Of a stretch of 64,000 nucleotides of DNA, positions 2,962 to 43,000 are shown in pieces. Position numbers and translations under genes: made by a program. Within the stretch, counting starts at the first letter, position 1, and the number at the start of each line of letters is the position of its first letter. Under the pieces are notes generated by a model. The model did not search any database and was not told the DNA's origin. It saw only the letters and a list, made by a program, of their open reading frames with translations. Origin of the DNA: Perna viridis. Taxonomy: Eukaryota. The stretch lies in assembly GCA_037379345.1 (NCBI GenBank), contig CM074516.1, positions 43,127,626 to 43,191,625 of the forward strand. Reading direction: 5' to 3'.

Positions 2962-5900
2962 CTGTAAAATAAAATTACAGGAAAAAATCACATATTAAGT
3001 ATAAAAAAAGTTCTCAGATGAGTTGTTCTGTATGTTCTAATAACTGTTTCTGATACCTTAAGTTCTGCTGAAGTCAAAATCTAGGACATTCGTTGTCAAA
3101 ATAATTTTAGTCAAGATGTTAAGAATGCAATTATTATGTTCCTGAAAACTTTACTTAATGCTTCATATACATTATTCTACAAATATGCATGTTTCCTTCC
3201 GTTACAAAATATATTACTACTGCAGTGTTTTGCTAACAACAGTCTGAAGTGTTAACATCAAATTTTAAAATAGACGTACAGATTAACCAGAACAGACTTT
3301 TGTTCGGAAAAGCAAATATGTTGTAGCCTAAATATCTAGTGCAGTGCAAGCTAGTGACAAATTGCTAGATTTGTATGAAATTTTGATATTTTATGTTAAT
3401 TGGTGTTGGTACTTCACTGGATCTTAGCATTAAATATAGTAATTCATCTAAATTAAAAGTAATCACATTTTTTTAAAGAAAATTAATACCATCTTGCACT
3501 GCATAATACATTTTGGAACAATTTATATGAATTTCAGACTTCAAACCTTGTTTTTGACAGCTGTAGATTTATTCTAAAATATGTTGTTTATATTTTTGTT
3601 TTTAATGTTATATAAAAGTTGTAAAACATTTGTTCCTAAGTTTGACTTGTGCTTGTGTATTATATACATATAAAGATGCATTTAGCAATGTTTCAGTAGT
3701 AAATTTAACGTGTTATTTAAACTAAGAATGAAAACATTTCATTACAGATTATCCTAGATATTGACTTTGGCTGAACCTTAAAACATTGCACATACCAATC
3801 ATCTAAGGAATACTATCTAGATAATTTACACTACACTGAATATTTCTTTCTTTTTCTGGTGGATAAAAGTATGATAGATTTGGCATAGTGAGTCTTATGT
3901 GACAACCACACAAGTAATCATATATGTATACTGTGAAGGTACTTTTATTTGTGAATATCGATTTTCATGGATCATAGGTTCATGGATTCTCATATTTGTG
4001 GTTTGACATTTCCCACAGTTAAAAAAAAAACAAAAACAAAAAACACAAAATATGTTTTTTTTTGTCAGGAATTTAATTACATTGTTTAAGTTTACCACGA
4101 AATCTACAAAAATTTGTATCCCACTTTCTTAGTTTTAATAAAAACAAACATGGTAAAAAAAGCACTGTCTAGTTTTCATCACGGAGTAACTTCATTAGCT
4201 CTTTTCAGCCGCTATAAAATCAATTCTAAATTGTACAAAATACATTAACACAAGTTATATAGGGATATATAAAAGAACAGAATGGGACAAAACAACCGAT
4301 ATACTTATTTTGGTGAAGACATTCTTTTAAGGAAAAAAAACAAAAAGTTAATGCCACACAGCTAAGAGTTTATCTTAAAAAATATAATTTTAAAGTACTG
4401 ACTAGGTACTTCATACTTTCACATCTATAAATTGAAAATGCAACCATCTGTAACTCTTTGTTTAACATTACTACAAAGTCAATGACAGATTCAGAAAACA
4501 CCAGCCATTTTATTAGACCATATTATGGGACAAAAAATATACATGATATGTGTAAAAATCTAGGTCAGTCAGATGGTAAAAAATGACTGCTGTTGTTCAA
4601 GAAATAAGTGGTGTGTATCATGAATAACAGGGTTTGTGTTATTGATTAGTAACTTGATAAGTACATATTGTATTTTAAACATATTTCTGTAATGTTGATT
4701 TTTTGTGCATCAAATTCACTGTAGGTTTGGAATCATTTAAAAAAAATAGGTCACCAAAAAGGCAGACAACAGATAAATCACAACAGGAAAATACAATCTT
4801 TTGTGTTGTGAAAAATAAATTTGCTTTGATTGACTTGATATTGTTTTTGACAAGTGTACTGAATTTCTATCTCTATACCCAAAGGAATTTTACCAGACTG
4901 AACAGCAATACTTTTCAAATAACAGCTAGTAAGTTACAGCAGATATATAACTACTTCTAATTTGTACATACATATTGTTAGTCATCATTAAGTCACATCA
5001 ATGTTAACTAAAATGAGTGAGACCATTGAATATTGTTGACTAATCATGAGAAAAAGGGCAATGATAGAGGAAATGTTGTTGATAAATCATGAGAAAGTGG
5101 GCAATGGTAGAGGAAATGTTGTTGACAAATCAGGAGAAAGTGGGCAATGACCGAGAAAATGTTGTTGACAAATCAAGAGAAAGTGGGCAATGACCGAGGA
5201 AATGTTGTTGACTAATCAGGAGAAAAAGGGCAATGATAGAGGAAATGTTGTTGACAAATCAAGAGAAAGTGGGCAGTGACCGAGGCAATGTTGTTGACTA
5301 ATCAGGAGAAAAAGGGCAATGATAGAGGAATGTTGTTGACAAATCAGGAGAAAGTGGGCAATGATTGAGGAAATGTTGATAAATCAAGAGAAAGTGGGTT
5401 ATGATACAGGAAATGTTGTGGATTAATCAGAAGAAAGTAGGCAATGATAGAGGAAATGTTGTGGTACAGTATACAATGGATGTTTAGACAGGGCAGACAA
5501 AGTTTAAACATAAATGTGTACAATACATCATTTTATGAGGGCTTTCTGAGAGTAACAGATAAATATTTGGTGCTAATTTTTATTAGTAAGCCATGTCACG
5601 CCAACATAGTTATCAATTGAATTTCCATTATCAGAACAAAAAATGATCTTCAGCATTCCCATTCATTTACAGAGGATATTACATGTTTGTTGACACTAGA
5701 ATCACTGCTTAAATGCTATTCAAATTGAAATGAATTCAATAAACCTTTTCAATGGTTTGCTCGTAGTTAATTTCATCATCATGCTAGAGAATTATTGCAG
5801 TATTAATTTTGGACTAGTTCCTCTTTCAAATACAAGTGCATGTAGCTAATAGCAAATTATAAACTGTTATATATATAATCTAATTTTACACAAATATATA

Positions 5901-12724: not shown

Positions 12725-12869
12725 TGCTAAAAGCAGGAGACCTTCAATACATCAATTATTCTGCATTTTTATTATTATCGGAAATGATTTCTTGTGCTCA
12801 AGGGACGTAATTTAAAAAGCGATGTAGAAAATACCGAAAAATAGAGTAACGCACTAAAACGTTCTTTAA

Positions 12870-40179: not shown

Positions 40180-41500
40180 TACAGCTGACCAGGCTTTTTT
40201 CTGAAGTGAAGTAGGGACAACAAAAATACTGCGAAACTGTTAACTCGCGTAGTGGTAATAATCACGTGCATGCGGTTCTCAAAACTCTAAAGGTCTTATA
40301 GATAATCTTAAATCTCGCTCCTTCGCTGCAGTTGATTCAATTATCACCATTACATACTCCCTACACCACGATAAATTGAAAACCCGTCTAAACGAAATCA
40401 TTTACGAAGCATTTTACTTGCAACGATGAGTAATTCTTACAAATTTATTGTTTAAGGCTACAATTATACATAAAATACCACGAGAGAACAAAAACACAGG
40501 AAGATGCTTTACTGAGCAACAGCTAGGTGATCAGTATATGCTAGATTTTCTCCTTGGAAACATATTTGTCACTTTTGGGGGACACTTTTTAAAAAATTTA
40601 TCAGCATTCCAATAGGACATAATTGTGCCCGTCTTCTAACCAATATGTTTCTTTATTCATATGAATCAGAGTTTCTTCAACATCCTGTGAAAGACAACAA
40701 GGTTAAAGAAGTTAGATCCCTTGATTTTACATCGATTTATTGACAATATTCTCGCAATTAATAATCCTAAATTTGGAGAATGGTTTCAATTTATTTGTCC
40801 ACCAGAACTAGAAATGTAAGAGACAGTTTCCTCCGCGTCATTTTTAGACAGTCACTTCGAATTTGACAACAGTAGTCATCTTAGTACAGAAACATACGGC
40901 AAACGAGACGATTTTGAATAACATTATAATTCCCTTGGCTTTCTTGTGCATAATATATCCAGCCTTTTTGATCAAGGTCTCATACGCTGAGAAACAGGCT
41001 TTTGGATCAAGGTTATGAACACATTTGTTTCATATGCTGCACAAAAAAGTTTTATTTCCGGTATCCAGATCTTATTGAGAAATTTTCTGTCTCTGACACA
41101 CAGATAATATAGATGATAGATTTTTATAATATCTACAAATTTATTTTCCGTTCATTTTACTTGTATCTTATTTTCATCCTAAACTTGATGCGCTTCGTCA
41201 CTAAGTTCAAGCCTTATTTTGAAGTTGGTGTCTTTGTTTTACAAGTATTTAATTGTATTTAGATCCTTTTATCTTCACTTTCAATTGTTCATATTTTCTG
41301 TACCGTTTTGACTTCTGATTTTACCCATTCATACTGTATACTGGAAATACTTAATCGTAATAAAAGTGGAAGGTTTAGCGAGCTATAAAACCTGGTTTAA
41401 TCCACCACTTTTTATTGGAAATGCCTGTACTAAGTCGGGACAAATGTTAATTTGTTATACTAACTTTACTTTTTGACTATTCCTTTTGAATATTGCCATG
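40180..41500 (+). mobile_element. Decayed Penelope-like retroelement, second subfamily
   Basis: Broken RT frames TLYTTI..KLKTRL, FLLGNIFVTFG, IPIGHNCA.LL.NMFLYSYESEF, FIDNILAINNPKF, SASFLD, YGKRDDF; tail carries the twister-like motif. Confidence 0.85.
41366..41440 (+). ncRNA. Type-P5 twister-ribozyme-like motif (catalytic G apparently lost)
   Basis: GGA-AGGU ... UAA-UCC-ACC ... G-CCUG-UACU-AA-GU-CGGG; P2, P4, T1 and T2 pairings can all be drawn. Confidence 0.6.
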
Positions 41501-41559
41501 AGTTTATCAATTCAGTTTATAACGGAGATATTTAAACAGGTTTGGGGGATCATAATGTA

Positions 41560-43000
41560 TCTCCACTCAAAATAACTTATTTAGCAATTATAGACCAATC
41601 TCAATACTGCCAATTTTTAGTAAGATTCTCGAACACATGTTTTCAATATTTTTTACAAATATCTAGCCTCAAATAAATTAACAACTTGTTGTCAATCTGG
41701 CTTTAGATTAAAACATTCTTGCGAGACAGCATTAGATAGCCTTGTTGATCCTGGCTGAAACATATATATGATGGTAAATGAACGGATGTATTATTTATTG
41801 ACCTTAGCAAGGCCTTTGACACTGTGCATCATAATGTATCATTATATCAGTTGAAATATCTTGGTATTTGTGTTAATTCACTTTTTATATGGTTTATATC
41901 ATATCTTAGTGATAGGCAACAATGTGTTGCTTGGAATGGATACTTGTTACAGCTCGAAAATATAACTATAGGTGTCCCACAAGGTTCTATACTTGGACCG
42001 TTACTTTTTTTACATCATACTAAGTGATTATCCAAAACGTATAAAATATTCACATGCTACAATCTATGCAGGTGATACAACCCATGATAAATCAATTGAT
42101 ACCATTGAATACAAATTAATAGCAAATTGGAAATTAATCGACAATGAATTAAAAAAAACACAATGTTAATTGGAACAAAGCAAAGGTTGTCGAAATGTAG
42201 AAAAATATGTATTGAAATTAATGATGTTATTCTTGAAACTGTTGATGTATCAAAACTCTTAGGAATAAATATAGATTGTTCTTTGACATGGCCTTATCAA
42301 ACAGATGTTTTAACTAAGAAGATATTGAAAAAAAAAAAAAAAAAATTGGGTATGTGTTACATAGATCAAAAAGTCTTGTCTAGCAATGCTTTACTATGGT
42401 TGATAACTGTGCAATTTTTTCTCATTTTAATTACTGTTGTTCTATTTGGTCTGGTGCAAAATGATAAGATTTTTAAACTTCAAAAAAGAGCAGCATGGAT
42501 AATTTTAAATGAGCATCATGAAATAACTCCATTTATTGTACTTTCTTACAAACTTAAATGGATGGCTGTGCCTGATTATTTTGTATACAGAAAGGCAATT
42601 TTGGTCCTAAAACTGTTGGATCCACAGAACATTTATATGTATTCACCAAGTTAGTGTGAGATCCACCAGACAGAGCAATCAAAATTAATTATAAGTTCCA
42701 AAATATATAAAAAATATAAAACAGAATGTTATAAGCGCTCTTTCATTATATCTGATAGCTATCTATGGAATGTGCCGAGCAACGATTTAAAAAATTGTAC
42801 ATAGGTGGAATCCATTAAAAAGTCATATTTAGAACATTACTTTGGTTAATTAAAATGTATATATCACCTGTATCATTTTTTAATTAGTATTATCATGTAA
42901 TTTTAACAATTTTATAATTTAGGTTGTAAATATATATATATTGCAGGACCATATCATAAACTAGTTAGGTAACTAAATATGTCATACTGCTTAAAAAATA
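41560..43000 (+). mobile_element. Decayed CR1/L2-clade LINE (RT and 3' end)
   Basis: NYRPISILPIFSKILE, QSGFRLKHSCETAL, FIDLSKAFDTVHH, GVPQGSILGPLLF, YAGDTT, KLLGINID..LTW, LQKRAAWIIL, with frameshifts and stops. Confidence 0.92.

Follow-up and report, generated by a model that had tools for sequence, protein, structure and literature searches.

The stretch of DNA analysed here (64,000 nt of Perna viridis contig CM074516.1, referred to as the window) has a G+C content of 31%, contains no N, and carries on its forward strand a decayed reverse transcriptase (RT) remnant of a Penelope-like element followed by a folded RNA module of roughly 100 nt in the tail of the same element (Table 1). The RT similarity ends at 41094, and a short motif at 41366-41440, about 270 nt further on, had been likened in an earlier note to a circularly permuted (type-P5) twister ribozyme. 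The element belongs to a repeat family referred to here as F1, and a second element of the kind, whose tail module belongs to a sister family referred to as F2, lies elsewhere in the same window. Other copies are named by locus: L011 and L058a are well-kept F1 copies, L069 is an F2 copy, L063 is a locus of this genome with a related RT, and L119 is a metagenome contig with a nearly intact element. A2 is an alignment of 32 F1 copies and R1 a covariance model built from F1 alone. Strings quoted for a family are what most copies read at that place.

Table 1. Features of the two elements in the window, with the basis for each assignment.
Feature	Position	Strand	Reading in this copy	Reading in most copies	Basis
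RT remnant of a Naiad-type Penelope-like element (F1), decayed and 5'-truncated	40280-41094	+			tblastn with the RT pieces of L063, 31-43% identity, E 1e-29; RT motifs in three-frame pieces; Pfam gave no match in the short pieces
Whole twister-type module, F1 version, decayed copy	41351-41454	+			R1, 96.9 bits; most conserved block of the repeat
Closing helix P5, remnant of 5' strand	41355-41363	+	TCGTAATAA	CCGTAATGG	A2 and pair counts; helix perfect in L011, L058a and L119
P2 3' strand, then L1 with the T1 strand GGT	41368-41374	+	GGA (41368-70), AGGT (41371-74), no spare G between them	GGG-AGGT, family-wide	A2
Palindrome 1	41376-41385	+	TAGCGAGCTA, broken at 41381	TAGCGCGCTA	Other lineages carry other perfect palindromes at this place
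Palindrome 2	41388-41398	+	AAACCTGGTTT, self-complementary around a central T, ending at the T before the predicted cut		5 of 5 self-pairs in 21 of 32 F1 copies; other versions in other lineages
TAA loop	41398-41400	+	TAA; by homology the scissile bond would lie between 41398 and 41399		Nearly invariant in F1 and F2; aligned to UAA of Rfam Twister-P5 in L069
P2 5' strand and L2 dinucleotide	41401-41405	+	TCC (41401-03), AC (41404-05; ACC 41404-06), AC being the partner of GT in L4 (T2)		A2
P3 hairpin, A/U-rich stem and variable loop	41406-41423	+	G at 41423		Stem kept while loop length and sequence vary among copies; quite different sequence, still paired, in F2 and metagenome lineages
P4 with 8-nt loop L4	41424-41439	+	CCTG (41424-27), CGGG (41436-39); loop TACTAAGT, made up of TACT (41428-31), AA (41432-33) and GT (41434-35)	Loop TACCAAGT; canonical TCCCAAGC	Aligned to the P4/L4 part of Rfam twister-P1 in L119
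P5, decayed 3' strand	41441-41449	+	CAAATGTTA; a deletion of about 45 nt follows, relative to other copies	CCATTGCGG	A2
Rest of the tail	41455-41515	+	Cut short	About 170-200 nt past the TAA	Comparison of copies
LINE RT, 5'-truncated	from about 41540				Pfam
Second element: RT remnant (15009-15477) followed by a decayed copy of the canonical-type module F2 (15575-15695)	15009-15695	+			RT 77-82% identical to L063; 40 genomic copies matched, 30 aligned

The Motif and Its Repeat Family

The observation made in the earlier note is confirmed, as all letters lie where it placed them and the proposed pairs P2 (GGA/UCC), P4 (CCUG/CGGG, with one U-G), T1 (GGU/ACU) and T2 (AC/GU) are all complementary. 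Recognition by the Rfam twister models and covariation across copies had both been named beforehand as tests of the twister reading, and the first of these was negative for F1. Rfam returned nothing at gathering score in the whole window, no ribozyme family at E up to 10 in 41200-41600, none in 20 other genomic copies of F1 (6 kb in all), and none on L011 taken alone. By the curated models, then, this motif is not a twister. A genome-wide search with Twister-P5, in which only 79 of 8367 candidates were scored, found one unrelated canonical type-P1-like site.

The motif is nevertheless part of an abundant, old repeat. A 251-nt query around it has at least 666 candidate relatives in the 723-Mb genome, and these copies are variably 5'-truncated but share a 3' end, which is the pattern of a retroelement tail. 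Window positions 41337-41441 form the best-conserved block, and sampled copies differ from one another by about 10-30% in the conserved core. Read across the 32 copies of A2, F1 has more structure than the earlier note described, which missed the closing helix P5, the two palindromes in place of P1, and the canonical sister family. A 9-bp long-range helix (CCGUAAUGG with CCAUUGCGG), perfect Watson-Crick in L011 and L058a, closes the whole block. It is followed by the linker AAGC, GGG, AGGU, a perfect 10-nt palindrome (UAGCGCGCUA), a second self-complementary stretch of 11 nt (AAACCUGGUUU) that ends at the U of UAA, CCC, AC, the P3 hairpin, and CCUG/CAGG closing the loop UACCAAGU. The minimum-energy fold of L058a reproduces P5, P2, P3 and P4 (z = -3.4).

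Within F1 the differences among copies are neutral decay. RNAalifold on 34 F1 copies predicted no structure, and although the named structure has 81% of cells paired, against 31-44% when partners are slid (P4 89%, T1 as ACC/GGU 87.5%, T2 as AC/GU 86%), covariation within F1 and within F2 was no better than in shuffles, because the copies differ by neutral decay. None of the 32 F1 copies passed a strict all-features descriptor, and the same descriptor gave two chance hits in A/T-rich DNA.

The copy in the window is a relic. Besides the traits of its family it has both P5 strands decayed, the first palindrome broken, ACU in the loop, a U-G pair in P4, a deletion of about 45 nt after 41446, and a tail cut at about 41515. 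The suggestion in the earlier note that this copy may be dead was right.

A Sister Family with a Canonical Twister Core

The second remnant in the window, at 15596-15670, led to the F2 family, for which 40 matches were found and 30 aligned. Most F2 copies read, in order, CAGGUU extended by CCACUG, GGGG(G)AGGG, UGAGCGCUCA, AAACAUGUUU (whose last U is the U of UAA) and then AA, CCCC, GC, CACAUA-loop-UAUGUG, CCUG, UCCCAAGC, CAGG, and AACCUG extended by CAGUGG; P5 of F2 is 6 + 6 bp. On L069 the best of all 4227 Rfam families was Twister-P5 (23.0 bits, E 0.0039), with GAGGG, UAA, GC and GUCCCAAGCC all aligned and the P1 part skipped, while locus L096 matched twister-P1 at 23.2 bits. These scores remain below the curated gathering scores (Twister-P5 37.6 bits, twister-P1 67.2 bits). 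R1 found the F2 module at the expected place in 25 of 27 F2 loci (best 32.7 bits, E 8e-6). F1 and F2 are therefore homologous, and both lie behind homologous RTs, the F1 RT in the window being about 40% identical to L063.

The differences between F1 and F2 fall as a conserved fold predicts. P5 and P3 have unrelated sequences that are each complementary, and both palindromes differ in sequence while remaining self-complementary. T1 reads GGU/ACC in F1 against GGG/CCC in F2, T2 reads AC/GU against GC/GC, and P2 is one G and one C shorter in F1. The unpaired core letters (UAA, the A of L1, and U and AA of the loop) are identical. A local hairpin AGGUUU/AAACCU in F1 would compete with T1, but was rejected because F2 has no equivalent at the same places, whereas T1 covaries. 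A local hairpin ACCAU/GUGGU at the P5 3' strand was likewise rejected, because the L058/L119 lineage loses it while the long-range P5 becomes perfect.

Conservation of the Fold Across Lineages

To look for the module in other organisms, we searched metagenome contigs with a pattern that fixes only TTTAACCC and CCTGTNCCAAGNCAGG, with a gap of 10-35 nt between them. This returned 88 stretches from many projects, of which 80 loci representing 77 distinct places were examined; they show the same layout, although a few look like chance bacterial hits. Where L1 could be parsed, the second (free) loop base and the free last base of L1 go together (A-T 8, C-G 12, C-A 2, T-G 1, and no A-G or C-T). In a MAFFT alignment of 24 representatives (A5) the same pair reads G-C 14, U-A 9, G-U 1, with none unpaired, and its covariation score was 0.190 against 0.096 +/- 0.019 for shuffles, reached by 0 of 500; slid partners give 19-48% paired against 97%. 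The A-U state occurs in the F1 type, in a lineage with a canonical T2 and a 4-nt P2 (L166, L158, L121), and in L110, but the switch may go back to only one or two events. For T2, the states G-C, G-U and A-U all occur across lineages, but AC is as frequent with loop C as with loop U, which fits CpG decay.

P5 is built from at least seven unrelated pairs of complementary strands, and P3 also differs between lineages and stays paired. At least six different perfect palindromes occupy the place of the first palindrome (UAGCGCGCUA, UGAGCGCUCA, UGAGAUCUCA, UGGGAUCCCA, UGGGCCCA and GGCGCGCC), and the second palindrome comes in several versions. These counts rest on a strict reading of parsed copies, as automatic scans for palindromes and P5 with G-U allowed were no better than shuffled controls. 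There is no P1 stem in any lineage. The 21-24 nt between L1 and UAA have no fold of their own (0 kcal/mol), but as a homodimer form a 10-bp duplex of about -18 kcal/mol.

In light of these data, a chance look-alike, in which an A/U-rich repeat happens to contain a hairpin with a twister-like loop, is very unlikely. In its favor, this copy and the F1 copies examined fail the Rfam twister models, a loose descriptor also hit two A/T-rich chance sites in about 0.4 Mb of the sequence searched, and RNAalifold gave no consensus fold for F1. However, this reading is contradicted by the homology to F2, by the alignment of every core letter of L069 to Twister-P5, and by the recurrence of the layout in metagenome loci with covarying P5, P3 and T1 and with palindromes.

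The Host Element

Craig et al. (PMC8557442) define Naiads by an N-terminal GIY-YIG endonuclease, a CxC linker, DKA in place of DKG, and the absence of canonical hammerheads; the word 'twister' does not occur in that paper. Contig L119 (3574 nt) holds on one strand a nearly intact element with GIY-YIG (PF01541, 27.3 bits, cut-off 22.6), the CxC motif TCDC, VPADKAS, and the RT motifs (RVT_1, 20.5 bits), and a well-kept F1-type module begins about 85 nt after the stop; the order of these protein domains is the Naiad layout. The last part of its tail is repeated just upstream of its 5' end, which fits the pseudo-LTR layout. L063 also has CxC (DCFC) and DKA (PADKAQ) but shows no endonuclease, and the window copy is 5'-truncated and cannot show this domain. 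Rfam found no hammerhead in the window, and (TA)n lies next to the truncated copy in locus L078. RT relatives number in the thousands, some carrying PF00078, and in 9 of 72 metagenome places with enough upstream sequence the RT was found upstream on the same strand. Pfam, NCBIfam and PDB sequence searches with the RT pieces of the window and of L063 gave nothing useful, and a protein atlas search gave only a DUF.

Other known tail elements are also very unlikely. Some Naiads code for selenoproteins, Naiads of clams and spiders carry SECIS elements in their 3' UTRs (PMC8557442), and in-frame TGA codons are frequent in the RT remnants. However, no SECIS, hammerhead or other Rfam family appeared at gathering score in the window or at E up to 10 around the motif, no AUGA...GA quartet sits at a conserved place, and ARAGORN found no tRNA-like gene, as in a SINE head, in the window stretch or in L119, L069 and L011.

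Departures from the Canonical Twister

The module has the order of parts of the type-P5 twister (Rfam RF02684, clan CL00120), namely P5, P2', GAGGG, [P1], UAA, P2, GC, P3, and P4 with its loop. P4 is closed by a G-C pair and the 8-nt L4 loop consists of U, three T1 bases, AA and two T2 bases, which would form two pseudoknots, T1 being supported by covariation across lineages and T2 by its complementarity in F1 and in F2. F2 carries the loop UCCCAAGC, and F2 and several metagenome lineages carry every conserved core letter. It differs in having two palindromes of about 10 nt in place of the P1 hairpin, and all copies score below the gathering score. The F1 type differs further in having AGGU for GAGGG, AC for GC, and the loop UACCAAGU (6 of 8 letters canonical). 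In addition, P2 has three rather than the canonical four pairs, and the G run before AGGU has exactly as many Gs as P2 has Cs (3), so that either the conserved guanine of GAGGG, the proposed general base, is missing or P2 has only two pairs; this also holds in L119. Part of F2 shows the same with four Gs, while other F2 copies and most canonical-type metagenome lineages have GGGG-GAGGG with CCCC. On L119, the best-kept F1-type copy, the best Rfam family is twister-P1, but only over P3-P4 (14 bits, E 1.4).

We also looked for traces of cleavage in the genome and in RNA. A pile-up of 5' truncation points at the UAA, expected if cut RNA were the template, was not found. Reads from one raw RNA run and three contig runs placed on L069 were few (68), came mostly from other copies, and showed no pile of ends.

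Possible Roles of the Module

The interpretation offered in the earlier note is partly supported. It was right that the element is Penelope-like (here, of the Naiad type), that the motif has the order of a type-P5 twister, and that the general-base guanine is missing. The double change it noted in T1 relative to the canonical core is real and covaries across lineages, whereas the double change in T2 is fixed in this family but does not covary cleanly across lineages. Its inference that this lineage uses a twister to process its transcript ends is not shown.

The reading we consider most likely, with moderate confidence, is that the window holds a dead copy of a twister-type ribozyme module in the 3' untranslated tail of Naiad-type Penelope-like retroelements. 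The homology, the layout, and selection on the fold including the T1 pseudoknot are shown by our analysis, whereas self-cleavage is inferred, namely that the master copies would cut their own RNA between U and AA. By analogy with the hammerheads of other Penelope-like elements, which have palindromic loops and act as dimers (PMC6765202), this would process tandem or read-through transcripts that start in an upstream partial copy, and the two palindromes would make cutting likely to depend on pairing between two copies. Weak cutting without P1 is possible (PMC8501958). In this view F1 is a derived form, with T1 changed from C-G to A-U, T2 from G-C to A-U, a P2 of three pairs and no spare guanine, and may cut poorly or not at all.

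The main alternative, which appears less likely, is that the F1-type module is a twister-derived fold that no longer cuts and is kept for another job in the tail, such as recognition of the template RNA by the element's own RT for target-primed reverse transcription, or pairing of two RNAs through the palindromes. The F1 type lacks the spare guanine and one P2 pair in all lineages seen, yet its sequence is strongly conserved and is not recognized by the Rfam twister models. Furthermore, a related Naiad lineage (L063, P0069) carries a different conserved tail module with no R1 match, so cutting is not obligatory for the group. However, the T1 and T2 partners are kept complementary in F1, UAA is nearly invariant, and the covariation of T1 across lineages points to selection on the pseudoknotted tertiary fold that builds the active site, more than a set of protein-binding hairpins would need.

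Twister-class motifs in retrotransposons are known as twister variants (T-variants) at the 5' end of Perere-3/RTE non-LTR elements, where they are thought to process the transcript and P1 is weak or unusual (PMC8501958; PMC7761336). Those are type P1 and lie at the 5' end, whereas the motif described here is type P5 and lies in the 3' tail of a Penelope-like element. In the literature searched, twisters were linked only to those 5' ends, and no paper contained both 'twister' and 'Naiad' or linked twisters to the tails of Penelope-like elements. The dimeric minimal hammerheads of Penelope-like elements (Cervera and de la Pena 2014; Lunse et al. 2017; reviewed in PMC6765202) share the kind of host element, the place near the 3' end in the pseudo-LTR, and a palindrome where a closing stem should be, suggesting action in pairs within tandem copies, but are a different ribozyme class.

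Naiads dominate many invertebrate genomes. Hammerheads are reported in all the other Penelope-like clades, while Naiads and most Chlamys elements lack canonical ones, an absence that was taken as a sign that the ribozyme is dispensable (PMC8557442). It is possible, though still tentative, that Naiads carry instead a type-P5 twister without P1, whose palindromes make it cut only when two copies pair, as in tandem pseudo-LTR transcripts, and that the F1 type is a further variant that works with a 3-pair P2 and without the usual general-base guanine. If Naiads carry a twister in the same place, a self-cutting RNA near the 3' end becomes a general feature of the group, filled by two unrelated ribozyme classes, which would argue for a real role in their odd tandem, pseudo-LTR life cycle. 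It would also add a natural twister form in which P1 is replaced by palindromes, and the F1 type would be a natural test of how much of the P2/guanine active-site geometry is needed.

Sequences Adjoining and Resembling the Tail Modules

The cut end of the Naiad tail in the window is abutted by a 5′-truncated non-LTR (LINE-type) RT fragment, in which RVT_1 scored 32.3 bits on the 41782-42024 piece. In another Naiad lineage, a different conserved tail module was found to follow the RT. This module is 80-90% alike between scattered copies and reads through as an ORF extension in locus L063, but gave no match to R1, the covariance model built from family F1.

A canonical type-P1 twister-like sequence was also observed in locus L067, with CAA in place of UAA and the loop GUCCCAAGCC. 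Rfam twister-P1 scored 32.1 bits on this sequence (E 2e-5 in a 251-nt search), which is below the gathering score of 67.2, and there was no ORF or RT nearby.

Analysis of runs X1-X3 and X21 against L069, a copy of family F2, showed an abundant transcript or contig (2460 nt, depth 62 in X1; 26 + 22 raw reads in X21) that shares only the 35 nt from GGG-AGGG through both palindromes to UAA-CCCC, corresponding to the first half of the module without P3 or P4. The flanks of this sequence repeat each other, and it therefore looks like a tandem array of half modules.

In loci L058-L062, two F1-type modules lie in tandem 265 nt apart behind one RT remnant, and the whole unit is repeated at least five times within 200 kb, as a segmental or tandem array. 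In locus L081, an F2 copy and an F1 copy (the one also fetched as L029/L032) lie about 700 nt apart on the same strand, and loci L095 and L080 likewise hold one module of each type. In locus L078, a long (TA)n microsatellite lies about 30 nt upstream of a 5′-truncated F2 copy, in line with the (TA)n target bias reported for Naiads.

Positions of the additional features within the window or the named locus
Feature	Locus	Position	Strand	Genome coordinates
LINE-type RT fragment	window	41540-42650	+	
Type-P1 twister-like sequence	L067	1516-1572	+	G000:C3:2746883-2746939
Half module shared with the transcript or contig	L069	1558-1592		
Different tail module	L063	about 5560-5900		
Different tail module	L098	2290-2420		
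Different tail module	window	12855-13421	-	
Different tail module	window	13961-14191	+	
Tandem F1-type modules	L058-L062	2157-2260 and 2422-2524		G000:C1:11.01-11.21 Mb
(TA)n microsatellite	L078	1366-1445		
Locus holding an F2 and an F1 copy	L081			G000:C6:35898441-35901550
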